Origin: Octopus bimaculoides
Taxonomy: Eukaryota
Length of the DNA stretch: 64,000 nucleotides
Assembly (NCBI RefSeq): GCF_001194135.2
Contig: NC_068990.1
Span: 84,840,687-84,904,686 of the forward strand
Reading direction: 5' to 3'
The notes beneath the pieces were generated by a model. That model saw nothing but the letters and a program-made list of their open reading frames with translations, ran no database searches and had not been told where the DNA came from. This document shows, piece by piece, positions 339 through 64,000 of this stretch. The position numbers and the translations under genes were made by a program. The first letter of the stretch is position 1. Each line of letters opens with the position of its first letter.

Positions 339-35529
<35,191 letters not shown>

Positions 35530-40770: not shown

Positions 40771-43354
40771 ATGAAAGATCGTTGGTGCAGTTTCTCCTTC
40801 GTTATTTCTGTTGCGTTTGTACGATAGTAACCAAAAGTAAACTACAGAGTGAACATTTTCTGTTCTTCAGAATTTAGTTTCGTAACCTCAGCAATCTCGC
40901 GCTTAAGTAAGACCTCTTTCCATATCAATCCTGGCAACTAGGGACACTAAATACAAGCATATTCTTATTAAGGGAGTATGTCCCAAAATGAGTTCCTTGA
41001 AATTTAAAAAAGATTTTTTAGGGTTCTGGGAAATAAGGTGTCTTTTAATGAAAAAAAATCACAGAATATTGTATCGTCATTGTCTACAAGTCATTTGTAA
41101 TGACTTAAATATGTTTAATTACCTCAACTATATATAGATTTATTAATTAATGATTTAATTTACAAGAGTAACGGGATATTAACATACTATTTAAATGGAA
41201 AGTGAGATTTCTCCAATTACTTTTTCTTAACCAAAACTGTATCTGCTTTCCTGTAACTTTTTCCTACTTAAAATTGATGCTGTTTTCTAGTCACCGAAAA
41301 ATAATATCCAATTTATATTATATTTTATAGATATGATTAATAGATCTCAAAGAAATTGGCGAAAAGGAATACCCATGAAAGAATATCGCTAAAATCTTTG
41401 GACAAAGCATGCATCTTACACCTTCCTTCCACCACTGTAAATTCAATACTTTCAGCCTACGTCAGAAAGAAATCAATATCTCTAAATATAGATTCTTAAC
41501 CAATTTTATCCAGTAATGTTTCTAAATATAGAAACACAAGTCCAAAATGGATAACCGTTAGTTTTATTTCATGGATATTGTGAGTGCATGTGTTTATGTG
41601 TAATTTTTTAATGTTAACGTGTTTGATTCTGTTTTAATATGTAGTTTATAGAATTTCACATGCCACTATCTTGGTGTTTGTATATGTGGATGTATATCTA
41701 CGTTTGTGTGTAATTCTTTGGGTTCATGTGCTTTGTCTGTGAGTGCGGCCTGTGATCTGTGTAATCATATGTACCAGTCTTATGTGTTAGTGTAACGTTC
41801 ATTACTTTACAGTGTCATCCATTTATGGCCTCCTAAAGTTTGTTCACAAACAATCCTCCTCACAGTTTTACTGCAAAATTAGAAACGTTTTCCGTAACAC
41901 ATTGCTCTTCCAAATCCTTCGTAGTTTAACATATGACAAATCACTAAGTGCACTGGACATACGTGGACACTCCCACGTGCGTAACAATGGTGGCCATAAT
42001 GGTAAAATTTGTGTAGTACAATGTAACTCATAAGAGTGATGGTCAAGCTCATCAATTGCAAGCATGTTGCGCTAGCTAGTTGGCGCACCGTTTCAAAAGT
42101 CCATTTTCTTTTCGGACAGACCATTCGTGTGTTTTCGTATTTTACTTTCAAATATTCCTTTGTTTCGCGACCACACTTCTTACAAAAGCATCTTTCCCTA
42201 CCTTGTTTTTGCTATTCCGTGTGCTTTACCATGGTTTCTATGGCTGGATGCCCTTCCTAATGCCAACCACTCCAAGAGTGTAGTGGATGCTTTTTACATG
42301 CCACTGACATTGGTCACGACTATGATCTCACTTGGCTTGACGGGTCTTCTCAAGCTGCTGACATCATCATCAACATCATCATTGTTTAACGTCCGTTTTC
42401 CATGCTGGCATGGGTAGGATGGTTTGACTGAGGTCTGGGGAGTCAGTGGCTGCACCAGGCTCCAATCTGATCTGGCAATGTTTCTACAGCTGGATGCTCT
42501 TCCTAATGCTAACCACTCTGAGAGTGTGGTGGGTGCTTGTTACGTGCCACCAGCACAGGAGCCAGTCAAACGGGCCTGGCATCGATCATGTTTGGATAGT
42601 GCTTTTTACGTGCTACTGGTATGGAAGCCAGTCAAGGGGTACTGGCATCAGCCATGTTCAGATGGTGCTTTTTATGTGCCACTGGCACAGGGGCCAGTCG
42701 GGCGGTCCTGGCATCAATCGTATTTGGATAGTGCTTTTTACATGCCACCAGCACAAGAACCAGTCAGGGGGTACTCGCATCAGCTACGTTCGGATAGTGC
42801 ATGGCAGATTTTCAGTACTGTTGAAGGAAATGAGTTTGTCATATACCCAGATATTGTTTAGGTCTTTTTCATGGAAGTAGAGTTTATTTGACACAAGGTG
42901 TATAGTTAGCTTATATCTATGTGCAAAATGTTTTTGAGAAGCAATGGATATCATCAATTCAAGGATTAATTACTATATTAAACAACAAATGAACACCATA
43001 ATAGATAAGAAAGCTAATCTACAGTCTTCATATTACTAATTGGTGATATTAAAATACATAAAATGCAGTTATTCTTTTAATTTAAAATGAAGACTATAGA
43101 TTAGAGCAGTGGTTTTAAATCTTTTTGATTTTGTGGTACATTGGGATTCAGATAAATCTGTTTTCACATTGTAAGTTTAAAAAGAAAAGTTTTAATTGAA
43201 AGATTTTATTTAGCCTGTTTCATTAATTCTCTTGATACCAACCCACTTGAGGATGCCCTAGTTTCATCCATCCATTGGTCCCTCTTCTCCACCCACTATT
43301 TCTAGCAATATCATGTCAGGATATCACTGAGGGTTCCTTAAAATGGTCGTTCAA

Positions 43355-47442: not shown

Positions 47443-47577
47443 TCAAACTGGGGACATTGGGTTTTTATAATTTGTCCTCGCTTGAATAGCGGTTAATCTA
47501 TCAAGCTCATCCTTCCATTTCTTTTCCTCAAGTTTCCATTTCTCTAACTCAGCACCAATAACCATTAGTCGCAGCAT
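47443..47577 (-). CDS. Terminal coding exon: MLRLMVIGAELEKWKLEEKKWKDELDRLTAIQARTNYKNPMSPV*
   Basis: GACTACAG acceptor, phase 0, charged helical/coiled-coil tail, TGA at 47445-47443. Confidence 0.85.
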   Translation of the reverse strand: MLRLMVIGAELEKWKLEEKKWKDELDRLTAIQARTNYKNPMSPV

Positions 47578-50500
47578 CTGTAGTCGAGTTTAACAATAAA
47601 TCAAATTTACATGAAGCTTCAATATTGTTTTAAGTTTATTCAAGATTTAAACTTTAACATGCAAAACCTACATCAAATAAACAACGAAATGAAATTCAAA
47701 TAGGAATCACACTTGCGTTTTTGCACAATTCTCTCTCATGTGTAGATAGATTCCCTCATCTCCCTGCAGACATTAACTTACAGCTGTTTAAGCTGAATTT
47801 AAACCACGTCATCCCACTAGGACTAGTAAATGTCATAGCTACAGCTCTTTCTTATGATTAAGTCATAAAATAAATTTCAGTTGACTAGCAACTGTTACTG
47901 TGGTCAAAGAGGATGAATAATTGTTTCTTGTTTCAAACAAAAGTGTTTTAATAGAACTGAAATATTGACAGTTTCTGTTACCTAGGTGAATAAATTTCTA
48001 TGGAGGAAAATGTTATGAAAGCATAATAGTCAGAGTGGAAAAAAATCACGGAGTTATTACTTCTGGTTTCAAAGGGCAGATTGTGTGGTGCTTGTGTACA
48101 AAGTACAATGTTGTATGGAAGCGAAACATGGGCACTGAATATAGAGGATGTATGAATGCTGGAAAGAAACTGGGTGAGTAATTTCCTTTCCTTTACTCCC
48201 CATGATTGTAAATCAGTGAACAACCTGAAGTAGGATGTATTCCGACAGGCTCACTTGCCCACAACACTGTATGAAGAAGAATGTCTTTTAATGGTCGTCC
48301 AATAACCCAGTAACCAATTTGTTATTATATTTTTGTTGAAATACACTGCCTTTGTTTGAATGAATTTTTAAAAATAATAAACGACCGTGAGGTTGTGAGT
48401 TTGAATCTTGGACCGGGCTGCGTGTTGTGTTCTTGAGCAAAACACTTATTTCATGTTGTTCCAGTTCACTCAGCTGTAGAAATGGCGTGGAGAGGGGAGG
48501 CTGGTATGCATGGGCGACTGCTGGTCTCCCATAAACAACCTTGCCTGGACTTGTGCCTCGGAGGGGAACTTTCTAGGTGCAAACCCATGGTCAGTCATGA
48601 CCGAAGGGGGTCTCAGCAGCTCAGTAGCTATTGTTACTACATTAGACTTTGCTTTTCTAAATTTGCCAACTTTGTACAACCCTCATCCAAACCTACATGA
48701 TGCAGTTGCCTCCCATCAACTTGTTTCACTGAATTTCAACCTCATAGATTTTGTATTCAATACCTTCTCAATCCTTTCTATTTAAAATGGGTCTGGAATT
48801 TTCATACCTTCTCCATGTCTCCCTATAAAACACCAACTATAGCAGCTCAAGCTGAACATTAATTACATGACCCCACTAATTTATCCCTTTCTCTCAGTCT
48901 AGATGCACCAAATTCTTAGATTTATCATGAATCGAGTTTCAATTGAATAGATGCTGTAACTCACCTCAGCTCCAACAAGCTGGGTTTCACCATTGTGCCG
49001 AAAATAACTCTTGCCTTTAAAAGAATAGAAACTTTCCTGTGCAAACGTGGAGATTTCTGTCATAAAAGAAAAATAACAATTCTATGGTTATTACATTTGA
49101 AAGCTGGTAGCAAATGATGCAAACTTTTAGGAGTATTAACCTTAACTTAGGAGTTGAGACAACTTTTCAATATTCATATAACATTGTCATGGCCGATGCC
49201 AGTACTAACTGACTGGCACTTATACCGGTGGCACATAAGCACCATTTGAGGTGGTTGATGCTAGTGCTACCTGACTGGTCCTGTGCTGGTGGCATGTAAA
49301 AAGCACCATTTCAGCGTAGTCGTTACCAGTGCCGCCTGACTGGCTCCTGTGATGGTGGCATGTAAAAAGCACCATTCAGGTGTGGTTGAAGCCAGTACCA
49401 CCTGACTGACCCTCATGCCGGTGGCACATAAAAAGCACCCACTACACTCTTGGAGTGGTTGGCATTAGGAAGGGCATCCAGCTGTAGAAACCTCGCCACA
49501 TCAGACTGGAGCATGGAAAGGGATGTGAAATGATGATGATGATTTTGAACTTGGAATGTTATCAGCATTTAAAGCCTATATTCCATACTGGCATGGGTTG
49601 GATGTTTTGACAGGAGCTGGTATGTCAGAGAGCTGCACCAGGCTTCAACTGTCTGTTTTGGTGTCGTTTCTACAGCTGGATGCTTTTTCTAATGCCAACC
49701 ACTTTACAAAATGTACTGCATGCTTTTTATGTGGCATTGGTATGGGAGCTTTTTACATTGTACAAGCATAAGTGCTTTATACATGAAACCAGCACAGGTG
49801 TTTCTTAAGTGACGTCAGCACACGTAAGGCAATTTGTCAGATGCTCAAAAAATTCTAACAATCCACTGAACCAAATAATTACCTGTTTGAGAACTCTCAA
49901 GAGCAAAAACAACTTCCCACTACATTCATATTCTATCCAGAGAGAGAGAGAGAGAAATATATATCACTCAATTGCTTAATGCAGAGAGAAGTTCATTATA
50001 CAGCTCACATCCTCTCCTAATGAGCCAATGTGAGCCAATATGCAACCATTTGATCTGTTAGAAGTAGCAGACAAATTCCCTCAGATCACATCCCATTTCT
50101 TTAAAAAAGGAAGGCCACATTGAACAATGAAGTCCCAGAAATACAAACAAACAGGATGGTCACAGTTGGAATGTTTTTGACCACTGAGAAGATCAAAGGT
50201 TTACTCAATCAGAACTGACTCCAGACAAAACAACAAGTCATCAACTTCTACACAAGAAACCTCTAAGATGAAGATAACCCAATCACATAAGAATCTGTAG
50301 TGGTGACAGATCATTCTCAAATGAGGATAAATCAACTGTCTCTCTTCTCAATGCTCTGGACTGTCACAACTTTTCAGAGAGGATTGTCATGGTTGAAATG
50401 CATTTGATTATAGGTCTGGTGGTTCAAAGTTGACCTGGTGTTAAAACAACATCAACAAGTGTCAAATCAATGAAGGAACCTATATTCAGTCGCTTGATGC

Positions 50501-53500
50501 ACTAGAAGTAGCAACTAGTTTCCCTACATTACAACTTAATATAGATAATATAGTATGAAGTACATTACGGCTAAAAAGGGGAAAAACTGACTGGAATATT
50601 TTTATTATTGGTCAGATCATTCAGGATTACCTTGAGTGTATAAACAACAACAACAGCAGCAGCAACAATATACATACGTACCAATAATATGCAAATCTGA
50701 AGACATTTTCTTAGCATTAAGAACTGGTTTGAAGTCTACAGTTATATTTGATATGATCAAAGGTTTTATCATCTGAGTGAATATCTGATCACAGTGTAGG
50801 CGAAATTTGTCTTTTTCTTCTCTAGATAAATGCACACCAACAACTTTATAAGCATCACTGATTCCAAAATACAATGTACAATTTCTTCCTGTAAGGAATA
50901 TACACAAACACACACACATATATATATATATCAGAAAAGCATTGTGGTACAGAACTAAAATAACAAGACAAAGAAGACGGAGAGTTTCATACAATGCAAA
51001 AAGGGAAGAGTTTAGTAACCTTTATATATTTCGGGCACAAAGGCCCATCATCAGAAGTAAAACGGAGTCAAGAAATGTGAGTCTATACAAATCTTGCTCG
51101 TTGTTTGTTGTGCTACACAACAATCAACATGTATAGACTCATTACCTCCGCCTTAGCAAAGGTGGAAGTATTGTTTGTTTGTATGTGGACAAGATATCTC
51201 AAGAACCGCCAGATGGATTCAGATGCAACTTTCAAGGATATTTGACCTCGTGACTGGCACGAACTGATTAGATTTTGGGATCAATCCAGTACCAGACAAG
51301 GATTCTGGATTATTTTTCCTGTTTTTTTTTTTTTTACTTAATTTTTGAGAGCGGTCGGGTTCATTTTTAGTATTCTCGTTTGTGAGAGCAGTTGAGTTTA
51401 TTTCAGATATTCTCATTTTAAAAATCATCTCTGGTTAATTGTTGAGAGGACATTGGTGTTGCCTTGGTGGAGGTTTGTGCTCTCTGAGTGCTCTTGTCGG
51501 CTCGTAAAATACACCATTTTGAGCGTGGCCGTTGCCAGTACTGCCTGACTGGCCTTCGTGCCGGTGGCACGTAAAAGCACCCACTACACTCTCGGAGTGG
51601 TTGGTGTTAGGAAGGGCATCCAGCTGTAGAAACTCTGCCAAATCAGATTGGAGCCTGGTGTAGCCATCTGGTTCACCAGTCCTCAGTCAAATCGTCCAAC
51701 CCATGCTAGCATGGAAAGCGGACATTAAACGATGATGATGATGATGATGATGTTAAATGGTGATGATGATGATGAAGACGGTACATGTAAACACACATAC
51801 ACAAATTTGTTTAGAAAGAGGGAGAGGAGAGATAGAGTTGTGGGGAGGATAAGAGAAAAAAAGAAAAGAAGAAATAAACAAACGTAAAAGCTTACGAGAA
51901 TTTAACATTCCACAGACAGTTTGACCTACTTCATTCATCCAATTTGTTTTGTTTGCTCGTAGAATTGCATGAGTTGTATCTTCGATGAAAGGCACTTCAG
52001 CACCTGGAATTGTGATGAAAATTATTACAAGACATGCATTGATACAAGAACACATAAATATATAAGACAGCAGGAATGGGGCAATTTACTGAAATGATGT
52101 TCAGCACATGCTTTGTATTTATCTAATTAACCACCACAAAAAAAAAAAAAGGCAACCCAGTAAATGGTTAGTATTCATTTAACCAATCACAGAAGACTGA
52201 AAGTCAATCAGTGAATGCCTGATGTTTATTTAATGAGCTATGGGAAAAATGAAAGTAAAGACTGACCTTGGCAGTTTTTCAACTCAGAGTGCCTTGAGAC
52301 ATTAGTAAATGCTAAAAGTCATTTAGCCATTATGTCTGCTATTTATGCTGTTCTGCCATCCTTTGAATCATCATCATCATCATCATCATTTAACGTCCGC
52401 TTTCCATGCTAGCATGGGTTGGATGATTTGACTGAGGACTGGTGAACCAGATGGCTACACCAGGCTCCAATCTGATCTGGCAGAGTTTCTACAGCTGGAT
52501 GCCCTTCTTAACGCCAACCACTCAGAGAGTGTAGTGGGTGCTTTTACGTGCCACCGGCACGAAGGTCAGTCAGGCGGTACTGGCAACGGCCACGCTCAAA
52601 ATGGTGTGTTCTATGTGCCATCCGCACAAGAGCCAGTCCAGGGGCACTGGCAACGATCTCGCTTGAAAATCCTTAAACATGTCACGGGCACAAGTGCCAG
52701 AAAGGCGATGCTGGGCACAGGTGCTATCCCGATTTCGCTTTTACTTGCCCCAATAAGTCTTCAACAAATATAAAAAGACATTGTGTCTTTTACTTGAAAT
52801 ACAGTTAAATAGAGTATAGCTGGAAAATAGCCATAAACAAAGGGGTACAGTTGACTGAAATGATTTTTTTTTTGTGCCTTAGTTCCATTTTTATCAGGTC
52901 TCCCTTTCTTCTGTTTATCCTCTTGGTCATGTTGCCTTGAATGAATAGAGACAACGTAGAGTAGTGAAGACTCTTTAGTACTGCAGAGTGCAAGACAACC
53001 TTATTAGAGCTGGTGCTATGATAAAATGCATCTGGTACACTGAGTAAAATGGTTTGAGAATGAATGGAAACAATGCAAGATCAAGAGAACATGAAAGTTT
53101 CTATCGTGATGGTGTCATGATACAATGCAGCCAATGCACTCTGTATCGAGTTCGGTGTCAGGAAGGGTGTGCAACCATAGAAACCTTACCAAAAATGGAA
53201 TGTATGAGATGTAAACTTCGAATTCTTCTAGGTGAATAGTAACCCTCAATAAGAACCAACATGGACCAAGATAACCTGTCCAACCCATCCTGACAAGTAA
53301 AATATAAATTAATGATGATGATGATGATGATGATGAATGTGCTTTAAATCCTAATCCTCATAAAATACAATTTCTTTGATAAATTGGAAGATGTGGTGTA
53401 GTCACTATCGCCATTCCAACTTCTAGGAATAGCTGGGTAGATGTGATGGTGTGGTTAGATATTCAGTCTGAGCTTCCACAGAATGTTATTTTGGGGAATG

Positions 53501-55480
53501 AATAACACAGAGAAGGTAGTGCAAGAGAGATGACTCTCTGAGGAGAGAACTGCCTTTCTTGGTAATTCCCACATCTTTCTTCCATACAACCAATGACCAG
53601 CAATTATTCAGATGGAACACTAACATTGACTTCAGTGTCTTCATCTAGTTTTCTCTTAGTCTGAGAAGATCTAAAAAAGGTTGTGGATATTTTTTTCCAC
53701 TTCCCCTAATTAGCAATTAAAGCAAAAACAGGAAAAAAATTTATCATTTGGACAAAACATGGTGTAATTGGATGAGTGACTGATATGCTGAAATTTTAGA
53801 CTACAAATCAACGAGTCAGAAGTTCAAATCTTGGTATAAGTACTGTATTGTGAACTCTAATCCACTCTTGACTAGACATAACTCTAGTTGTCCTAAATAG
53901 ACATGGTTATAAAACACAAATATGTAAATATGTACGACTTAAATGACACGTGTGATAAATATGAGTGATGAGATGTATTTGCATGTAAAAGATCAGATAC
54001 CCACAATTCATACTAATGTCGAAATTGTCCATGAAAAACAATACAGGCAAAGAAACTATATAAAAGCAGACAATATACAGAAAAAAATGTATTAAATATA
54101 TAAAATGTGCACATACCATATTGATAACATCCATCCTGTAGTTTAAAAGGCTTCTCCCTTAAATCATATCTGTCTTAATAAAAATAAAAACAATAATAAT
54201 TGGAGCATTGGGCATGATAAAAAACAAACAAAAGCTATACCTGGATCCTCAACACTACACACTATCCAAAAAATAGCCCTGCTAGGAACAGCCCACAGTC
54301 TACATAAGACACTATCAATTCAATAGTATAACCTAAACAAAACAGGTCACAAACACAAGCCACACTCTATACCGCAATTACCCAGTGAAATAAACTTCCA
54401 CCAGCAAGTTAGATAACCAATGCATTGCACACTTAACACACAATACAAGCAGTAATACAACAAAAGACTGCAGCACACCTCAAGAGAAAAAAACAAACAG
54501 CAACTTAAAGGGATGAAAAGCTAACCCATCTTCAATTTGTCATAGATGGATACAGCACAGTGCTGATAAGAAAAATCAAAACCACTGGTTCCTAAGCTGG
54601 TTATCCATTACTCTACAGACTAAGTTATGTGTGGTTCTTTAAGAAGTTGTTGATAAAAACAAGCCAATTATAAATTACTTGATTTCTTCAGAGAGTTTGT
54701 ACATTTCATTTCAGGGTCTTCACCACAGCCATCCTACAAGGAACAGACATGAAAACCAGGCTATAACAAATAACAAATAACAAATAGGTAGTTGATATAA
54801 AATGGTAAGAATATTTAGCTTGAAATCATCATCATCATTACATCATGATTAAATGTCTGGATTCCATGCTGGCATAGGTTGGACATTTTGGCAGAATCTG
54901 AGAAGTTGGAGGACTGCATCATGCTCTAATAGCTACTTTGGCATGGTTTCTTCAATTGGATGTCCTTCCTAACACCAACGACTTTTCAGAGTATACTGGG
55001 TGCAGTTTTTGTGAAGATCACTTCATAACTTACAAGGCTAAGGGCCTAAAGTGACCCCTATAACTGAGAGAGAATTGAAGTGAGATGGTTCTAAGTAGGG
55101 GATGAGGGAGGAAAGTAAGTTGAGAGGAACAAATTTAAGTTACTATTGGATGGTGGCGGAGAGGGTTTAAATATAAGTACTAGGTTTGATTTGATTGACT
55201 AAGTCCATCAAAGCGGAGCCTCATCATGGCCAGTCTAAGGACGGAAACAAATAAGAAGGTAAAAAGAGAAAGATGGTAGATTTGAAGGTCCTAAAAATAA
55301 AAGGGATTCATGCTGGTGGCACGTAAAAGCACCCACTACACTCTCAGAGTGGTTGGTGTTAGGAAGGGCATCCAGCTGTAGAAACTCTGCCAAATCAGAT
55401 TGGAGCCTGGTGTAGCCACCTGGTTCACCAGTCCTCAGTCAAATCGTCCAACCCATGCTAGCATGGAAAGCGGACGTTAA

Positions 55481-55511
<31 letters not shown>

Positions 55512-58500
55512 CTTTGTAAAACTTTGAACATGAATTAAACTTTGTATCCGCTCATATAAAAAAAGGTGAAGTCAACCCCAGAAGGATTCAAACTGAAAAT
55601 CATAAAAATCATATTTCACATATCGAGCCTTCCTTTATTTGTAACACTTTCATAGGCCATTAGGATGAAAAAGGTAGACAAAGTATAACTTACGTATAGT
55701 CTAAAATCAGCTAAATTTTCTTCCACAGTTTTTAATGCAGGAAGATAAGTTTTGGTATACTGATGTCTGAAAATATATAATAGGATAGCTCTATATTTTA
55801 TATTTCTGTTGACAGTTGATGACGAAACAAATATAAGTACAAGTTTTCAAGGCATATATCAGTTCTCTGTAACAGAAAGAATCAATTCTGTGAGAGCCGA
55901 TCAGAAATAGTTAATTTAGTGGGAGGTGGTGGCGGGGGGAGGCAAATAGGGAAGGGACTGAATGTAATAGTGTGCCAGTGCTGTAATAGTATGTGAGCTG
56001 AGTTACCAAGTCATCACTGCCCAATCACCATCCTCAGTATAGCAAGAAACCATGATGGAGATGACAGAAAGAAGAGGCAGTAGCAGTTGTAGCAAGCTTA
56101 CATCACTGAGGTTGACTTTGGTTTTCATCATTTCATGATCAATACATCGTTAACCTGTTCGCCCTCCAAAATATGAAGGTATTTTTTATGTTAGTGGTCA
56201 TTCTTCGGCTTCCTCTTCTCTTTGCATGTATCTGGGACAATTATTTAGTGATTGACATCATTAACAATTTCATATAAAAACTTCTATTCAACTCTCTCTA
56301 CTGACTTGACAGGCTTGGCTGTGTGTCTAAGAAGTTCACTTTTCAGCCCTATGGTTTTCAAGTTTAATCCAAAGTGCAGCACATTGCACAAGTGTCTTCT
56401 TAAAAAACAATAGAAAATAAAAATATACAAAAAAAAACTTTAAAAACTGTACAATCATAAAGTGATTGATGAAACAAAGTATATTTACACTTTTTCTTTT
56501 TGTATATTTTGACTAGAGTCCGTTTTCTTCAAGTATATCAAATGCTTCACCACATGTTGTATGAATGGTCTACAAAGCATAGAAGCTGGGCACAAATAAA
56601 GAAGTCTGGCAATCATCTTCGTGCCTTCAGAATGGAAAGAAAGAAATAGAAACTTCAGTCAAGAAATGGCTTAAAACTCACATAATAAATGTTCTTGTAG
56701 TTTTTAACTGGTTTCAGTCATTGAACTTAGGATCATCTGCAAGTGTTTAGTCAATTACACAGACCTTCGTTCATTAACGTGCAAGTGGCTGAGCACTCCA
56801 CAGACACGTGTACCCTTAATGTAGTTCTCGGGGATATTCAGCGTGACACAGTGTGACAAGGCTGACCCTTTGAATTACAGGCACAACAGAAACAGGAAGT
56901 AAGAGTGAGAGAAAGTTGTGGTGAAAGAGTACAGCAGGGTTCGCCACCATCCCCTGCCGGAGCCTCGTGGAGCTTTAGGTGTTTTCGCTCAATAAACACT
57001 CACAACACCCAGTCTGGGAATCCAAACCGCGAGTCCGCTGCCCTAACCACTGGGCCATTGTGCCTCCACCATACATATAATAGTCTCTGTCAAAATGAGA
57101 TGATTGTGCCCTTTCCGTTTGTTTTTAGGACAGTAGGGGGTAATTTAAGGAATATCTGCTGTTGTGTGCAGCAGAATAGGGAACCATATAGAAGCTACCT
57201 TCCCTCATCATCATCATCCTTTTTCAAAGTTTGTTTTCAATACTTGCATGGGTTGGACAGTTTGATAGGAACTAGCAAGCCAAAGAACTGCACCAATTCT
57301 CTTTGTCTGCTTTGGCATTGTTTCTATGGCTGGATGCCCTTCTTAATGCCAACCACCTTACAAAGTGTACTGGGTACTTTTTACATGGCATCAGCACTGG
57401 TAGGGTCAACAAGTAGCTTGCAAGACAAAGATTCCTTGACTGGAAGGGGGAGTTGTATTGAGGGAGGTGGCTTTGTACCAAATTTCATTCATAGTCCACG
57501 TATACATTGACACTGTATTGTCAATGTATATTGTTAATGTATTAGTATAGAGAAGCAGTTGCCAGTAGCAAATGATGAAAATGACAATGCATGTATACAC
57601 ATGCACATAACAAAATGAACTAATGAGGGAGCCTCTATGAGGTTGCTTGATCAGCTAGAAATAGCAACCAAATATCACTGCTTGAAAAAAGGGAGGATGC
57701 ACTGTGCAATGTAGTCCCTAGTAGAACAAGAAAAAGAGGGGACGATCATACCTTGAACACTTTTGATGACAGGTCTCGTCAGTGCTGACTTGGAGCTTAA
57801 CCATCACAACACAGACAGAATTTGCTGAGACAGATATTCTATGAATGGAGGCCCTTCTTGTCACTAATCTCACATGTTTCTAAACAAGATAATAGTTCCC
57901 TTTGGCCGGACATGTTTTCACGGAAGACTGGAAACAAAATATCTCACTTGTATGATGTGACACTCACAGCTATCACATGATGTCAAGACAAGGAGAGAAA
58001 AACACACACACACACACATTTTAGGCTTCTTTTAGTTTCCATTTAAAGTATCCACCCACTAGGCTTGGGTCAGCCTGGGGCTACAGTAGAAGACACTTGC
58101 CAAGGTGCCAAGCAGTGGCAACGAACCTAAAACCATGAGGTTGGGAAGCAAAACTCTTAACCATACAAAATGGTTTAGAAAAGTAAGACAAATAAAATAG
58201 AATGAAGCAAAATTAAAATTAAATATAATTACCTCCAAGTATATAGAAGTGTTTCTTGATACTTTTGTTTTTGAAAATAGCATTGCTCAAATAGAGCATA
58301 CAATATTTTAGTAAACTGTCCACCTTATTGCCAAAGTGGAGTTTGTTTTCCAAATATTCATTGCAAATCTCTAAAAATAAGACGACAATAAACTTAGTGC
58401 AACTTCTGACATCAGGAATTTGTAAATAGCAAGTTTGTATGTAATCAAATACAGTTACCATTAGTAATTGACTGTTTTTCATACACTGTGCCATCAAGAC

Positions 58501-60596
58501 ACACACAGTAATAAGACAAAATAAACACTAGTATCTTGTAAACACTATGTCAACAGACACAACACTGAAACAAAATAACAATCAGCAATTGTCTCATTGT
58601 TTCTGAAACACTATGTTATCAAATTCTTACCTTAATCAAATTGTTAGGTAAACATTGACATTGTATTGTCAATGTATATTGTTAATGCTAATATGGAGAA
58701 TCAATTGCAAATAGTAAACGATGAAAATGACAATGAACGTATACACATGCACATAACAAACTGAACTAATGAGGGAGCCTCTATGAGGTTGCTTGATCAC
58801 CTAGAAATAGCAATCAAATATCTATCAAATCATTGCTTGAAAAAAGGGAGGGTACATTGTGCAATGTAGTCCCCCAGTACAACAAGCACCCATTACACTC
58901 TTGGAGTGGTTGGTATTAGGAAGGGCATCCAGCTTTAGAAAACCACGCCAAATCAGACTGGAGTCTGATGCGGCCTTCCAATTTACTAGCCCTGGTCAAA
59001 CTGTCCAACCCATGCAAGCATGGACAATGGACATATAATGATGATGATGATGATGAAGTTAAAAGGAAACAACACAAATCTACTTACCAATTATAAACTT
59101 TAAAATGTCGGCATTATTTATTACACTGTGTTTGATTAAGTTAGTCTCCAAACAAAAATTACTGAAAATTTTGAGAACATCAATCTTCACAAGTTGAGAT
59201 GAAGCTTTTGCAGTTTTTAAAAGAATTTCACTTCCCGAAAGTTTATCAAACAATAAACCTAGTATAAGAAAAAAAATTAATTATAATTTAAAAAAAAAAT
59301 GTAAGTAAAAATAAATAAATAAATAAATAGGCGCAGAAGTGGCTGTGTGGTAAGTAGCTTGCTTACCAACCACATGGTTCCGGAAATGCTAATAAAATGT
59401 CACTGCCTACAGTTCAGTGATTTTTAAGGCAAGTGCAAATGTAAACATTCACAAAGACAAACAAAAATGACAAGATTAGTACAGTTTCTGTCTACCAAAT
59501 CACTCATTTTGGTCTGGCCTCTCATGTCTACCCTACAATGTCATTCTAAAAACAAACAATTACACTATCAAAATCTTGAAGCTACAACATAATTCAGAGT
59601 AATCTGAATGCTAAAGGGTTAATTCTTGCATCAAACCTATTTACATTAGTTTTCCATCAGTAAGTGCAGGTGCAACTGTGTGGTAAGAAATTTGCTTTCC
59701 GACCACATGGCCTTGGGTTTGGATCTATTGTGTACCACCTAAGGTAAGTATCTTGTACTATCGACCTAGGTTGATCGAAATTTGAGTAGATATGATAGAC
59801 AGAAACTGAAAGAAGCCTGTTGTATACATGCGAATATATAGACATGTATATGTGTGTGAATGTGTGTGCATGTTACTGTCTTTTTGCCTTAACTTCTTGT
59901 GATTGTCGTAAACAAATGTCACCACCATGCAAACAGCGTCTGTTGTTTCCAATTTTCCATTAAAACTTGTTTGGTCATGGTGGATATTACTTTGTTTAGA
60001 AACAGGTAGGAGTTGGTGACAAGAAGGGCATCTGACTGAAGAAAATCTACCTCAACGAATTCTGTCTGTCTCATGCAAAAATGGAAAAGTGGATGCTAAA
60101 TGATGATGATGATAATTTCATTTAAATTGTGTAACTTACATAGATCAGGATCAAACCAGGTGAAATTGCACAAGCAGCTCACTGCAAATTTGTTGGTATA
60201 GTCAGATTCATTCCTTTTAAGAGCCGAAAAGAGATGGTGAACAAAACTTTGATTAGCAGAAATTGCAGAACAGATTTTTGGCACAGTCGATAAATGGTAG
60301 AGAACACTTAGAGAAGCCATTGACAGGAGAGGAAACAGATGGCCATTGTGTTCTTCCAAATTGTCCAAAACTGATTCTATTTTTAATAGAATGCCATGTT
60401 TCATAAACAACGTTTTAATATCAGAACTTTGGTCAGCTATGAAAATTCTGTTAATGAAGTCCAAAATGGCTATTTCATTGACAATATTTTCTTCATTGCA
60501 TGTCATATCCTCATTAAACTGGTCAATCAAATTCTTCACAACAACATCATTTATTTCTGATGGTAATGGTGCCCCCTTCAGAAGCAAATAAGCCAT
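47443..60596 (-). CDS. ARM/HEAT-like repeat plus C-terminal Schlafen/AlbA_2-domain protein, ~542 aa, 11 coding exons
   Basis: Exons sum to 1629 nt (543 codons including TGA) with compatible phases throughout. The C-terminus YQYGAEVPFIEDTTH...VCGMLNSRRNCTLYFGISDAYKVVGVHLSREEKDKFRL...KPVLN...IIEIS...SYFRHNGET follows the AlbA_2 (PF04326) pattern. The N-terminus is Leu-rich with ARM-like helix motifs (AVSCLCNF, LSVLYHLS, LKIFSNF). One junction (54173) needs an AAG acceptor. Confidence 0.8.
48965..49056 (-). CDS. Schlafen/AlbA_2 domain exon 3: ISTFAQESFYSFKGKSYFRHNGETQLVGAE
   Basis: TTTATGACAG / GAG|GTGAGT, 92 nt; Y-x-R-x-x-G-x-T motif. Confidence 0.9.
50682..50888 (-). CDS. Schlafen/AlbA_2 domain exon 2: RNCTLYFGISDAYKVVGV...MSSDLHII(E)
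   Basis: TCCTTACAG / TTG|GTACGT, 207 nt; TLYFGISD..VVGV matches 'G.L.iGv.Ddg.v.Gv'. Confidence 0.92.
51020..51057 (-). ncRNA. Minimal hammerhead ribozyme core in an intron of the Schlafen-domain gene
   Basis: CUU-CUGAUGA-U-GGGC(CUUUGU)GCCC-GAAA-UAUAU-A-AAG: 3-bp stem I, 4-bp stem II, palindromic AUAUAU stem III. Confidence 0.7.
51141..51440 (+). mobile_element. Helentron/HINE (DINE-1-like) non-autonomous element
   Basis: Starts ATTACCTCCGCC-TTAGCAA-AGGTGGAAG (hairpin), then GTTT repeats and GGACAAGATATCTCAAGAAC...GATTTTGGGATC; family recognised from memory. Confidence 0.5.
51896..52003 (-). CDS. Schlafen/AlbA_2 domain exon 1: AEVPFIEDTTHAILRANKTNWMNEVGQTVCGMLNS(R)
   Basis: AATTCCAG / CTC|GTAAGC, 108 nt; VCGMLNS matches the AlbA_2 'vcAfaNs' motif. 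Confidence 0.9.
54117..54173 (-). CDS. ARM-Schlafen exon: (N)RYDLREKPFKLQDGCYQY(G)
   Basis: Donor ATG|GTATGT; joins in frame to give YQYGAEVPF. Acceptor ambiguous (AAG at 54174 versus CAG at 54170). Confidence 0.7.
54679..54733 (-). CDS. ARM-Schlafen linker exon: DGCGEDPEMKCTNSLKKS
   Basis: TTCCTTGTAG / CAA|GTAATT, 55 nt, phase 0 to 1; no homology support. Confidence 0.6.
55694..55766 (-). CDS. ARM-Schlafen exon: HQYTKTYLPALKTVEENLADFRLY
   Basis: ATTTTCAG / TAC|GTAAGT, 73 nt, phase 2 to 0. Confidence 0.8.
56489..56624 (-). CDS. ARM-Schlafen exon: (G)TKMIARLLYLCPASML...SSQNIQKEK(V)
   Basis: Pyrimidine tract plus AAG acceptor, donor GT|GTAAAT, 136 nt; only this frame is open. Confidence 0.75.
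56770..57068 (-). mobile_element. SINE family C, partial
   Basis: Matches the other C copies. Confidence 0.9.
58233..58370 (-). CDS. ARM-Schlafen exon: (E)ICNEYLENKLHFG...KKHFYILG
   Basis: Acceptor TCTTATTTTTAG, donor GAG|GTAATT, 138 nt, phase 1-1. Confidence 0.85.
59088..59258 (-). CDS. ARM-Schlafen exon: (C)LLFDKLSGSEILLKTAK...NNADILKFII
   Basis: TATACTAG / TTG|GTAAGT, 171 nt, phase 1-1, open. Confidence 0.88.
60140..60596 (-). CDS. ARM-Schlafen gene, first coding exon (MAYLLLKGAP...NFTWFDPDL)
   Basis: Acceptor TCTCTTACAG at 60610, ATG in strong context (AAC ATG G) after an in-frame TGA, 152 open codons, donor T|GTAAGT. Confidence 0.88.
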
Positions 60597-61133
60597 GTTT
60601 CACAATAATCTGTAAGAGAAATTAATGAGGGTAAGTACCATTATTTGTTTAATTATGATTGGTTGAAATGGTCAAATACTTCTCACTCACAATGTTTTCA
60701 TATTCATACAGAAAAAATGAAAAAGAAATTCTGATTTTCCCTGCAAGCTGTATTTAACTTTAACTTTTAAACATGGGAACTTAGGTGACTCAAGGCTTAT
60801 AGAAGTCCATGGTGCCATGCAAAACAAGCAAATCTGAATCCACACGATCATGGTTTTGAGTTTGCTCTCATGAACAAAATACAAAATTAAAGATTCACCA
60901 TTCTCTGAAGACCTTCCACTGCATGTTTAAATGTACTCTTTCGTGTATCATTATAATATCAGCTTCTGCTTCACTGAACTAGATGTCAGCATATCTTCTT
61001 CACCCAAATCCTATCATCTCTTCTCAGACCTCACAATAAGCACTTCGTCTGATCTTTCCACACTAGAACCATAAATCCACTTCCATCTCTATCCATATTT
61101 TCCCTAAATACATACATACAAATACAGACTTAC

Positions 61134-61225: not shown

Positions 61226-62491
61226 TTCATATTCGTTTTCTACCCCCCCCCCCCTTTTTTTTGTTTTTCTTGTTTTCGTGACCGGAACTTAAACTGTATA
61301 TTGACCAAAATTGGTATTTCTTTGCTTGAAATTTTTCACAAATAACTTTCAGACGATGTAGATTATGTTTATATCGAAATTCAGAGTGGTCAAAAAATAA
61401 ATAAATAAATAAAAAAGGTGGGCACGCAAAAGTAAATGAAACTTGAAATTTTGATAAAAATTTGTGACGTGTGTCAGTATGCGTGTGCATGCANNNNNNN
61501 NNNNNNNNNNNNNNNNNNNNNNNNNNNNNNNNNNNNNNNNNNNNNNNNNNNNNNNNNNNNNNNNNNNNNNNNNNNNNNNNNNNNNNNNNNNNNNNNNNNN
61601 NNNNNNNNNNNNNNNNNNNNNNNNNNNNNNNNNNNNNNNNNNNNNNNNNNNNNNNNNNNNNNNNNNNNNNNNNNNNNNNNNNNNNNNNNNNNNNNNNNNN
61701 NNNNNNNNNNNNNNNNNNNNNNNNNNNNNNNNNNNNNNNNNNNNNNNNNNNNNNNNNNNNNNNNNNNNNNNNNNNNNNNNNNNNNNNNNNNNNNNNNNNN
61801 NNNNNNNNNNNNNNNNNNNNNNNNNNACACTGCGCGAAATGCTGATCGGGATTTCATCTGTTTTTTTATGTTCTGAGTTCAAATTCCGCCGGGGTCGACT
61901 TTGCTTTTCATCTTTTCGGGGTCGATAAATTAAGTACCAGTTACGCACTGGAGTCGATGTAATCGACTTAATCCCTTTGTTTGTCCTTGTTTGTCCCCTC
62001 TATGTTTATCCCCTTGTGGGAAATAAAGAAATAAGAAATGTTAGCACGTTGCGCGAAATGCTTAGCAGTATTTCATCTGTCTTTACGTTCTGAGTTCAAA
62101 TTACGCCGGGGTCGACTTTGCCTTTCATCCTTTCGGGGTCGATAAATTAAGAACTAGTTGAGTACTGACCCCCCACCCAGAAATTTCGGGCCTTGTGCCT
62201 AGAGTAGAGAACAATTTACTGAGAAATTTGGTTGTAATTTTTAGAAGGTCTGTCGTGAGGTAAGACAATAAAAGTTATTCAGTTAATGAAATATACCAAA
62301 TAATAAGTTTCTGGCATAGGGACAAGACCAATAATTTGAAGGAAAGGGGTTAGGTGCCTCGAAGTTATTTGGAAACCAACGAAACAGACTCCACATGGTT
62401 GGTATTCGGCCATGCTCGTTATGAAGCGTGGAGAAAATGTAATCATATTGTAATGTCGAGGAGAAAGACGCATTAGATAATGCTATAGATG

Positions 62492-63506: not shown

Positions 63507-64000
63507 ATCTGTCAATGAGGGAGTCGCTACTAATTTCCCTTTTATTTGTTTTAGTCATTGGACCGCAGCCATGCTGGGACATTGTTTTTGAAAGGTTTGG
63601 TCGAAGAAATCGGTTCCAGTCTGGTACTTGTTCTATCAGTCTGTTTTGCAGAATCGTTACGTTGCAGGGACATAATAAATAAACAAGCACCAGTTGTCAA
63701 GCGACGGTGGGGGACAAATATAAGCACAAAGGTACACACACACATACACATAACTGGATTCCACATAGTTTCCACCGACCAAATGAACTCACAAAGCATT
63801 GGTCGGCCCAGGGCTATAAAAGACGAATGCAGTGAGACCAAACCTAAAGGTACATGGCTGGAAAGCAAGCTTCACATAGCTATGTCTGTGCCAATGGTCC
63901 AGTGTTAGCCATGTATGGCACGGCATGCAATGAAGGGTTAACACATTTTGCATGGCAGCAACTTTGGCTTTGAAATATAGATATAACATCAGTTTCAAAC

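Follow-up and report, generated by a model that had tools for sequence, protein, structure and literature searches.

Nucleases with the AlbA_2/Schlafen fold serve as effectors in antiviral defence (SLFN11-14, SAMD9/9L and bacterial Avs9) and in piRNA processing (PUCH). To our knowledge, the characterised animal members come from vertebrates or nematodes only, and we know of PUCH only as a nematode-specific complex. Many Schlafens carry a helicase, and in those of group III an SF1 helicase follows a linker domain. SAMD9 is built as SAM - AlbA_2 - SIR2 - P-loop NTPase - TPR - OB (PMC12680541), and its tRNA-binding residues are K198, K214 and R221 (PMC10246899). The PUCH complex (TOFU-1/TOFU-2/SLFL-3/4) is the piRNA 5'-end nuclease of C. 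elegans. It is made from Schlafen-fold domains and includes a functional Schlafen-fold subunit, TOFU-1, which has no catalytic residues (PMC10567574).

Here we describe the gene LOC106871329 of Octopus bimaculoides. This locus reveals a conserved invertebrate family in which the AlbA_2 fold is combined with armadillo (ARM) repeats and, outside the cephalopods, with a Tudor domain.

Gene structure and annotation of LOC106871329

The exon model was rebuilt using splice sites and reading frames alone, in a window which comprises the whole 64-kb stretch of DNA analysed here. On the minus strand (60596..47443) 11 GT-AG exons join to 1629 nt encoding 542 aa and a stop (Table 1), and an in-frame TGA is located immediately 5' of the ATG. 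The intron phases agree (seven of phase 1, one of phase 2 and two of phase 0). The original prediction of 11 phase-matched exons giving one uninterrupted protein is confirmed, as the spliced product is letter for letter identical to XP_014773205/6/7.1 (isoform X1; UniRef A0A0L8HF02). The annotated span of 13,154 bp covers exactly 47443..60596.

RefSeq contains three isoforms of the gene. XP_014773205.1 is entitled "uncharacterized protein LOC106871329 isoform X1", X2 (496 aa) lacks exactly the residues of exon 3, and X3 (473 aa) lacks exon 9 with the AlbA_2 core. In UniProt the product is labelled 'Schlafen AlbA-2 domain-containing protein'. The gene had been called hidden, but it is absent only from a prokaryote-style ORF list; with regard to annotation it is already in RefSeq and is only without a name and a function. 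The statement that this is not a named gene holds, as our literature search found no paper naming LOC106871329 or describing the combination of ARM/Tudor with AlbA_2.

The number of exons visible as ORFs changes with the cut-off. The three exons mentioned earlier are seen at a length of at least 100 aa (exons 1, 8 and 9), whereas at least 110 aa leaves only exons 1 and 9 and at least 30 aa brings up most of them. The small exons escaped a codon-usage scan for which the obvious exons had served as training set, and were recovered by listing the splice sites together with their phases. A tblastn search of the window with the protein revealed no paralogue, and neither a tRNA scan nor an Rfam scan of this DNA gave a match.

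Table 1. Exons of LOC106871329 and selected codons, with positions in the window
Feature	Position	Strand	Residues	Content
Exon 1	60140..60596	-	1-153	start codon and ARM repeats 1-3; donor T/GTAAGT
Exon 2	59088..59258	-	153-210	ARM repeats; phase 1/1, GT-AG; 97.7% nt identity in O. vulgaris
Exon 3	58233..58370	-	210-256	ARM repeat; skipped in isoform X2
Exon 4	56489..56624	-	256-301	final ARM repeat and beginning of disordered linker
Exon 5	55694..55766	-	301-325	linker; 95.8% nt identity in O. vulgaris
Exon 6	54679..54733	-	326-344	linker
Exon 7	54117..54173	-	344-363	linker end and first strand of AlbA_2
Exon 8	51896..52003	-	363-399	AlbA_2 N-terminal motif YGAEVPFIEDTTHAIL
E370 codon (exon 8)	51983-51981	-	370	
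D371 codon (exon 8)	51980-51978	-	371	
Ala375 codon (exon 8)	51968-51966	-	375	GCA
Exon 9	50682..50888	-	399-468	AlbA_2 core; R421, D425, R428 and D432 family-invariant by conservation counts; skipped in isoform X3
D410 codon (exon 9)	50856-50854	-	410	
Exon 10	48965..49056	-	468-498	AlbA_2 C-terminal strands (E468, R487); phase 1 to 0, strong GTGAGT donor
Exon 11	47443..47577	-	499-542 and stop	long C-terminal helix, kept across the family (alignment)

Domain architecture and conservation in cephalopods

Single-sequence AlphaFold2 was uninformative for this protein (pLDDT 50). The prediction was therefore rerun with a 58-sequence alignment, which resulted in a mean pLDDT of 83.8. The protein begins with an ARM array of about six repeats (aa ~10-290), which is followed by a linker predicted to be disordered (291-350), the AlbA_2 domain (355-496) and a helix (497-536). 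In the model sixteen helices are found in aa 17-285, in agreement with the armadillo-repeat superfamily, which is defined by a right-handed superhelix of three-helix repeats of ~42 residues. In Foldseek the N-terminal part matches designed ARM proteins (TMt 0.76-0.80, rmsd 3.5-4.0, ~270 columns) as well as the ARM domain of APC. The Pfam Arm models do not match the octopus sequence itself, but Arm and ARM_ARMC5 match the corresponding regions of homologues. The ARM-type helical repeat proposed earlier for the N-terminus is thus supported. From aa 291, where the linker begins, the pLDDT is below 50; this disordered stretch of ~60 residues is coded by three tiny exons. Across aa 360-530 it is ~81-96, which includes the part of the helix from 500 to 530. 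According to the model, the helix encoded by exon 11 may form a coiled coil or serve in oligomerisation.

Pfam PF04326 (AlbA_2) matches aa 384-493 with 42.7 bits against a gathering cut-off of 25.3. The match covers profile positions 19-115 of 118, and it is the addition of exon 10 which lengthens it to position 115. The relatives from Argonauta and from Logan contigs are likewise above the cut-off. Searches of PDB sequences returned SAMD9 first, followed by SLFN11/13/12/5/14. Foldseek agrees, as for aa 355-536 the best match is the tRNase domain of rSAMD9 (9o0d, E=7e-6, TMt 0.60), then SLFN11/12/13/14 (probability 1.0). The AlbA_2/Schlafen domain expected at the C-terminus is therefore present, although its closest solved relative is the tRNase domain of SAMD9 and not a Schlafen. 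The Pfam scan of the protein found this single AlbA_2 stretch, no helicase, as had been stated earlier, and no other Pfam domain.

In the genome of O. vulgaris 11 of 11 exons are found at 91-98% nucleotide identity, with the AG/GT sites kept and one 3-nt indel. Between the two species the whole CDS has a dN/dS of 0.32, with values of 0.27 in AlbA_2 and 0.45 in the ARM part. Because exons and splice sites are kept at such a ratio, the model is not a chance chain of ORFs, and at the level of its coding sequence LOC106871329 is shown to be under purifying selection. Exon 1 has 89% amino acid identity and a dN/dS of 0.22 to Logan contig L001 from a third species. The orthologue from Argonauta hians has 529 aa and 53% identity. 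In addition, Logan contigs of 2.3 kb, assembled from several sequencing runs, encode in one uninterrupted ORF a 534-aa cephalopod relative, whose alignment covers aa 3-529 at 38% identity. The runs behind the Logan contigs are SRR11869384, SRR29271482, SRR25158136, SRR25097173 and SRR31864759. For exon 1 a word-indexed homologue search yielded a single Logan fragment and for the AlbA_2 exons no match, and the same kind of search with the family alignment as query yielded four proteins only.

These data bear on the question whether the gene is decaying into a lineage-specific pseudogene or is mis-joined, as an annotation artefact made of separate ARM and AlbA_2 genes. The eroding catalytic residues (see below), the RefSeq isoforms skipping exon 3 or exon 9, the disordered linker on three tiny exons and the moderate dN/dS of the ARM part would be in line with that. 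However, the frame is intact over 11 exons in two Octopus species at a dN/dS of 0.32, the Argonauta orthologue is full-length, the 534-aa ORF of another species is uninterrupted on intron-free contigs, and bivalve, gastropod, chiton and amphioxus proteins have the same N-to-C order. Due to this conservation and to the intron-free contigs we reject both versions as highly improbable.

The ARM-Tudor-ARM-AlbA_2 family

Judged by its alignments, LOC106871329 belongs, as the cephalopod branch, to an uncharacterised family whose architecture is ARM - Tudor - ARM - AlbA_2 - long helix and which is found in bivalves, gastropods and amphioxus. Using phmmer, proteins from Mercenaria, Mya, Haliotis and Patella were found which span ARM and AlbA_2 (E=5e-20 to 7e-8, query aa 133-526). 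Members are Mercenaria XP_053381499.1, Mya XP_052798037.1, Haliotis XP_067662362.1, Patella XP_050389478.1 and Branchiostoma XP_019632566.1. The sources name all of these relatives 'uncharacterized' or 'hypothetical', and a phmmer search of the PDB with the Mercenaria protein gave no match. Among 18 family members scanned with Pfam, AlbA_2 was found in 18 and TUDOR in 13, in addition to ARM families. The chiton relative scanned has an AlbA_2 match and no Tudor match. The earlier suggestion was that of a possible lophotrochozoan factor; the architecture did not arise by itself in lophotrochozoans but derives, with the Tudor lost, from a wider family which also occurs in amphioxus.

The Tudor domain of the relatives (PF00567, 29-34 bits) is above the gathering cut-off and is located between ARM blocks, whereas PF00567 was found in none of the four cephalopod sequences. 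In hhalign, aa 14-123 of the octopus protein align to the pre-Tudor N-termini of the mollusc relatives (probability 96.7%, E=3.9e-10). The break point of the Tudor insert lies inside exon 1, between RNESD and YTNKF (aa ~131/132, window ~60204). Therefore this is a true deletion and no Tudor exon was overlooked. As deduced from these alignments, an insert containing the Tudor domain was deleted in the cephalopod lineage from the central part of the armadillo array; its size in the different relatives is roughly 210-340 aa.

The combination of ARM, Tudor and AlbA_2 suggests a route by which an RNase could be recruited to methyl-arginine-marked partners, and the ancestral Tudor-bearing form would more probably have been an active RNase recruited via such marks. 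It is established that the Tudor domains in germline proteins recognise methyl-arginine of PIWI proteins. By analogy, the family could consist of Tudor-recruited nucleases of the PIWI pathway in germ granules, and in the octopus a partner would supply the lost Tudor domain and the catalysis. We regard this as decidedly unlikely. The relatives do pair an above-threshold Tudor with an AlbA_2 nuclease fold, and a Schlafen-fold trimer with non-catalytic subunits processes piRNA 5' ends in C. elegans (PMC10567574). However, the argument is purely one of domain analogy, Tudor domains read other marks too, the octopus protein is without a Tudor, and sequence-level orthology to TOFU or SLFL was not found. 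Slightly less doubtful, but still unlikely, appears the broader suggestion that the mollusc and amphioxus family is an unrecognised class of RNases which methyl-arginine guides in germ granules or in the PIWI pathway, an animal counterpart of nematode PUCH. The octopus gene would be a catalytically degenerate descendant of it without Tudor, now a pseudonuclease adaptor.

Active site and comparison with known systems

The active-site residues were mapped by sequence-profile alignment and not by structural superposition. We take the catalytic acidic clusters to be E209/E214/D252 in SLFN11 and E184/E196/E218/D241 in SAMD9. In the profile alignment to SLFN11 (7fex: LEYGEIVPFPESQSIEFK) E370 corresponds to E209 and A375 to E214. 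D410 is equivalent to SAMD9 D241 and SLFN11 D252, and E387 aligns with SAMD9 E218. In an ungapped extension of the SAMD9 alignment E196 pairs with E365 instead. A pair of E365 and E370 in the form E-x4-E was dropped as a candidate after profile alignment to SLFN11/13.

With Ala375 at the position equivalent to E214, the complete catalytic acidic cluster of active AlbA_2 RNases is not found in the octopus protein by this profile mapping, and its canonical acidic triad, as aligned, is shown to be incomplete. Of 58 relatives, 48 have Glu at position 375, where Octopus has Ala; Argonauta keeps the Glu. The triad positions 370/375/410 read E/A/D in O. bimaculoides, K/A/N in O. vulgaris and S/A/N in the 38%-identical cephalopod relative; E370K and D410N of O. 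vulgaris, seen in the protein, are borne out by genomic DNA. The GG of the N-x-GG motif is changed to N-C in the octopus protein. O. bimaculoides retains E370, D371 and D410 together with the family-invariant D425, D432 and E468, and a non-canonical active site may be possible in its AlbA_2 domain.

It is rather unlikely that the protein is an active single-domain RNase effector of the Schlafen/SAMD9 type with an armadillo sensor or adaptor, acting in innate immunity or small-RNA processing. In favour of such an effector are an AlbA_2 fold nearest to the SAMD9 tRNase domain, the acidic residues E370, D371, E387 and D410 retained in O. bimaculoides, purifying selection on the domain (dN/dS 0.27) and the D/E...E...D pattern which the majority of the family keeps. 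On the other hand, the E-F-K strand has Ala375 in place of the Glu seen in most relatives, the triads of O. vulgaris and of the 38% relative are degraded further and yet both genes are intact, the GG motif is lost, and nothing ties LOC106871329 to immunity. In SAMD9 one exchange of Glu or Asp for Ala at a site of this kind is enough to abolish activity (PMC10246899), and a single substitution likewise inactivates TOFU-2 in PUCH (PMC10567574).

The reading of the original prediction, a sensor or adaptor coupled to an RNase effector, is thus only partly supported: the ARM and AlbA_2 folds are there, but the effector part is weakened because the acidic triad is incomplete (Ala375, and K/A/N in O. 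vulgaris), and the protein is a Tudor-less offshoot of its family. A nuclease-impaired RNA-binding adaptor is more likely. On balance we hold it to be somewhat probable that the AlbA_2 domain is no longer a canonical RNase and has been kept for binding of RNA or of a partner, and judging from the aligned residues the protein probably binds RNA rather than cleaving it. According to this adaptor model the domain would not work as a canonical two-metal RNase and would be an RNA- or partner-binding module comparable to TOFU-1 of PUCH. From the folds, a protein or a peptide may be bound as partner in the armadillo groove, and the C-terminal helix may serve in oligomerisation. The octopus protein could then bring either RNA or a nuclease partner that is active to its protein target. 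With the Tudor domain and part of the catalytic centre lost, the octopus copy offers a natural experiment on the role of this fold.

Compared to PUCH, whose subunits are without ARM repeats, there is no sign of TOFU/SLFL orthology, as no PUCH sequence or structure was among the phmmer, PDB-sequence or Foldseek matches. The N-terminal domains of SLFN11/12/13/14 (7fex, 5yd0, 7lre, 9uie) share the AlbA_2 fold, and the octopus motif YG-x-x-VPF-x-E matches LEYGEIVPFPE of SLFN11, whereas the Foldseek TM against SLFN targets is just 0.13-0.33. The horseshoe of the Schlafens is composed of two AlbA_2-like lobes, and SLFN chains align with the family profile over two stretches. With a single lobe, the octopus protein lacks the two-lobed core of the Schlafen family proper (SLFN groups I-III); in addition it has ARM repeats and no helicase.

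The tRNase SA (AlbA_2) domain of SAMD9/SAMD9L (7ksp, 9o0d) is the best match in sequence and structure (aa ~355-540), and it is a single lobe as well, in which E218 and the catalytic D241 align with E387 and D410 of the octopus protein. However, only AlbA_2 is shared, the remainder being ARM repeats and linker, and SAMD9 has no ARM array, so that the architecture lies outside the SAMD9/SAMD9L family. In the octopus alignment SAMD9 K198, K214 and R221 have no counterpart, and the Glu of the strand bearing the E-x-K motif is missing. The ARM-Tudor-ARM-AlbA_2 relatives differ from the octopus protein in their length of 740-1000 aa, in their Tudor domain and mostly in a Glu at the position of Ala375. 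With them it shares collinear ARM blocks, AlbA_2 and the C-terminal helix, as expected for a member of that family, and N397, D425, R428, D432 and R487 are invariant in both.

Structure and surroundings of LOC106871329

The original prediction described an 11-exon minus-strand gene for a 542-aa protein, and this structure was recovered by a gene model rebuilt solely from open frames, GT-AG sites and matching intron phases. The exons add up to a CDS of 1629 nt (542 aa plus stop), an in-frame TGA lies directly upstream of the ATG, and an exact-sequence look-up revealed identity with XP_014773205/6/7.1 (isoform X1 of LOC106871329, Octopus bimaculoides). The annotated gene length of 13,154 bp is exactly that of the predicted interval (47443-60596). 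The gene had been called hidden, which is true for the bacterial-style ORF list but not for the annotation, as it is present in RefSeq and in UniProt (A0A0L8HF02, "Schlafen AlbA-2 domain-containing protein"). As a gene call it is therefore not new, since proteins with AlbA_2 domains are known and this one is already annotated.

Two further RefSeq isoforms each leave out one exon without a shift of the frame, exon 3 in X2 (496 aa) and exon 9 in X3 (473 aa); the X3 product would be without a functional AlbA_2 domain. A good splice acceptor (tctcttacag) precedes the start codon by ~14 nt. It is also conserved in L001, a contig of a related species matching exon 1, and points to a 5'-UTR exon that lies further upstream and is still unmapped. 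An assembly gap ~0.9 kb upstream of the start codon could conceal a 5'-UTR exon or promoter sequence.

The animal DNA of the window is AT-rich, is interrupted by assembly gaps and contains numerous copies of a ~200-bp SINE-like interspersed repeat (17 BLAST matches including the self-match, 72-97% identity); nine of the matches sit in introns of LOC106871329. Many spurious entries of the ORF list are translations of this repeat. Downstream of the gene no other gene is called for 10 kb (~37.4-47.4 kb), no paralogue was found within the window, and scans for tRNAs and Rfam families gave no matches there. The nearest same-strand upstream gene, encoding a TAF5-like protein (TFIID_NTD2 and WD40), ends ~6.5 kb upstream and beyond position 64000 (L007, a stretch of CM046610.1, 1-3517).

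Coordinates of the features in the window
Feature	Position	Strand	Remark
Exon 1	60596-60140	minus
Exon 2	59258-59088	minus
Exon 3	58370-58233	minus	one ARM repeat
Exon 4	56624-56489	minus
Exon 5	55766-55694	minus
Exon 6	54733-54679	minus
Exon 7	54173-54117	minus
Exon 8	52003-51896	minus
Exon 9	50888-50682	minus	AlbA_2 core
Exon 10	49056-48965	minus
Exon 11	47577-47443	minus
Splice acceptor	~60600-60625	minus
Repeat	10492-10692
Repeat	13545-13672
Repeat	15276-15426
Repeat	21650-21844
Repeat	25650-25831
Repeat	42234-42584
Repeat	49252-49703
Repeat	51380-51700
Repeat	52418-52619
Repeat	54914-55003
Repeat	55307-55452
Repeat	57306-57397
Repeat	58884-59009
N run	61494-61826		upstream of start codon
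N run	6682-7305
N run	10759-10869
N run	14293-15090
N run	16049-16524
N run	25927-26031
N run	32477-32881

Domains and conservation in cephalopods

Pfam assigns a single domain, PF04326 SLFN_AlbA_2 (aa 384-493, 42.7 bits, cut-off 25.3), which agrees with the predicted lack of a helicase; the N-terminal 350 residues are without any Pfam match. AlphaFold2 gave a poor model from the single sequence and two confident domains with an alignment of 58 sequences (mean pLDDT 83.8), namely sixteen predicted helices at aa ~10-290 and an alpha/beta domain with one long helix at aa ~355-536, separated by a disordered linker (291-350). The predicted armadillo-type N-terminus is borne out by Foldseek matches to designed armadillo-repeat proteins in the PDB (TMt 0.76-0.80, rmsd 3.5-4.0 over ~270 columns) as well as to the APC armadillo domain. 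The Schlafen fold of the C-terminus is likewise confirmed by Pfam, by PDB sequence searches, in which the AlbA_2/tRNase domains of rabbit and human SAMD9 match best, and by Foldseek (rSAMD9 tRNase, 9o0d, TMt 0.60; human SAMD9, 7ksp; SLFN12/14/13/11).

All 11 exons were found in the O. vulgaris genome with 91-98% nt identity; all AG/GT sites are kept and the sole indel comprises 3 nt. The orthologue extends over 28.7 kb (L002, the O. vulgaris locus on OX597823.1, 3001-31756) in comparison to 13.2 kb in the window, because its introns are about twice as long. Between both species dN/dS is 0.32 for the whole CDS (dS 0.108), 0.45 for the ARM part and 0.27 for the AlbA_2 part; exon 1 against L001, a Logan contig of a third species, gives 0.22 (89% aa identity). 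Argonauta hians contains an orthologue of 529 aa (53% identity). A 534-aa cephalopod relative from the Logan assemblies (38% identity, residues 3-529 aligned) is encoded by an unbroken ORF on ~2.3-kb contigs from several sequencing runs. These contigs look like spliced mRNA and show that one protein comprises both the ARM and the AlbA_2 part. That the gene is decaying or mis-fused is highly improbable, as this is contradicted by the conservation and the intron-free contigs.

The ARM-Tudor-ARM-AlbA_2 family

An exhaustive phmmer search revealed 95 matches, many of which share the AlbA_2 domain only. Relatives of 740-1000 aa, with E-values down to 5e-20, align over the second half of the armadillo region, the AlbA_2 domain and the C-terminal helix. 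The sources comprise, among others, bivalves (Mercenaria, Mya, Ylistrum, Mytilus, Solemya, Sinanodonta), gastropods (Haliotis, Patella, Batillaria, Babylonia), a chiton (Liolophura) and amphioxus (Branchiostoma). All are named "uncharacterized" or "hypothetical", and our literature search found no paper on LOC106871329 or on the ARM-Tudor-AlbA_2 combination.

In the multiple alignment the positions of octopus residues ~131 and 132 are separated in these proteins by an additional stretch, whose length varies among the relatives (~210-340 aa). Pfam finds a Tudor domain within it in 13 of 18 members (29-34 bits, cut-off 23), none in the chiton protein, and Arm, ARM_ARMC5 and CTNNBL repeats on both sides. 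Since cephalopod aa 14-123 are homologous to the pre-Tudor N-terminus of other molluscs (profile-profile probability 96.7%, E=3.9e-10), the family layout, as read from these profiles, is ARM - Tudor - ARM - AlbA_2 - helix. The Tudor segment is absent in all four cephalopod sequences. A missed exon is ruled out in octopus, for the junction falls within exon 1, which indicates a true deletion. As the domain is present in amphioxus, bivalves and gastropods, it was most parsimoniously lost in the cephalopod lineage. That the family belongs to the small-RNA machinery as a Tudor-guided RNase seems unlikely to us.

The same AlbA_2 subfamily is also joined to an RRM in a 373-aa Patella protein (P0013/P0115) and to a CCCH zinc finger in an 1836-aa protein from Logan (P0051); in invertebrates the fold is repeatedly coupled to RNA-binding modules.

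Active site and putative function

Three or four clustered acidic residues form the catalytic centre of AlbA_2-fold nucleases (PMC10246899, PMC10567574, PMC12680541). In SAMD9 E184, E196, E218 and D241 are each essential (PMC10246899); in PUCH the exchange E216A in TOFU-2 alone abolishes activity, and TOFU-1 is without any catalytic residues (PMC10567574). The same site is common to SLFN11-14 and bacterial Avs9 (PMC12680541).

Residue equivalences were derived from sequence profiles. Pig SLFN11 LEYGEIVPFPESQSIEFK...GVDDK is aligned to octopus YQYGAEVPFIEDTTHAIL...GISDA, by which E370, Ala375 and D410 correspond to E209, E214 and D252; in the sequence alignment with SAMD9, D410 and E387 correspond to D241 and E218. 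Positions 370/375/410 are E/A/D in O. bimaculoides, K/A/N in O. vulgaris (confirmed in genomic DNA), S/A/N in the Logan relative and R/E/D in A. hians, which has D at 371. At position 375 the 58 aligned relatives have Glu (48), Asp (three), His (two) or Ala (five); those with Ala include both Octopus species and the Logan relative. According to the profile alignment O. bimaculoides therefore has an incomplete canonical triad, and O. vulgaris lacks it. The octopus proteins keep the near-invariant residues N397, D425, R428, D432, E468 and R487, and position 371 is likewise Asp in 40 of the 58. Together with purifying selection, the simplest reading is that the conserved function of the domain would be independent of canonical two-metal catalysis; a non-canonical acidic cluster is possible.

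The original prediction regarded the protein as an active RNase effector with an ARM sensor. This reading is kept alive by the remaining acidic residues but weakened by the sequences from O. vulgaris and Logan, and we consider it rather unlikely. The best-supported reading, to which we incline slightly, is a nuclease-impaired adaptor: the AlbA_2 domain would bind either RNA or a partner with catalytic activity and the armadillo groove a partner protein, and oligomerisation may occur through the conserved C-terminal helix. These steps go beyond a present fold, an incomplete triad and a constrained sequence, and are suggested accordingly. A role in germ granules or the PIWI pathway, inherited from a Tudor-guided ancestor, would be compatible with either an adaptor or an active effector and appears distinctly unlikely.

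New are the assignment of the gene to an unstudied ARM-Tudor-ARM-AlbA_2 family, the cephalopod Tudor loss and the triad erosion within Octopus. The family-profile search of the PDB ranks SAMD9 before SLFN11, SLFN13 ("Schlafen 8"), SLFN12, SLFN5 and SLFN14; SAMD9 is the nearest solved relative of the octopus nuclease fold, ahead of any Schlafen. While the Schlafen core is two-lobed, the octopus protein comprises one AlbA_2 lobe without a helicase.
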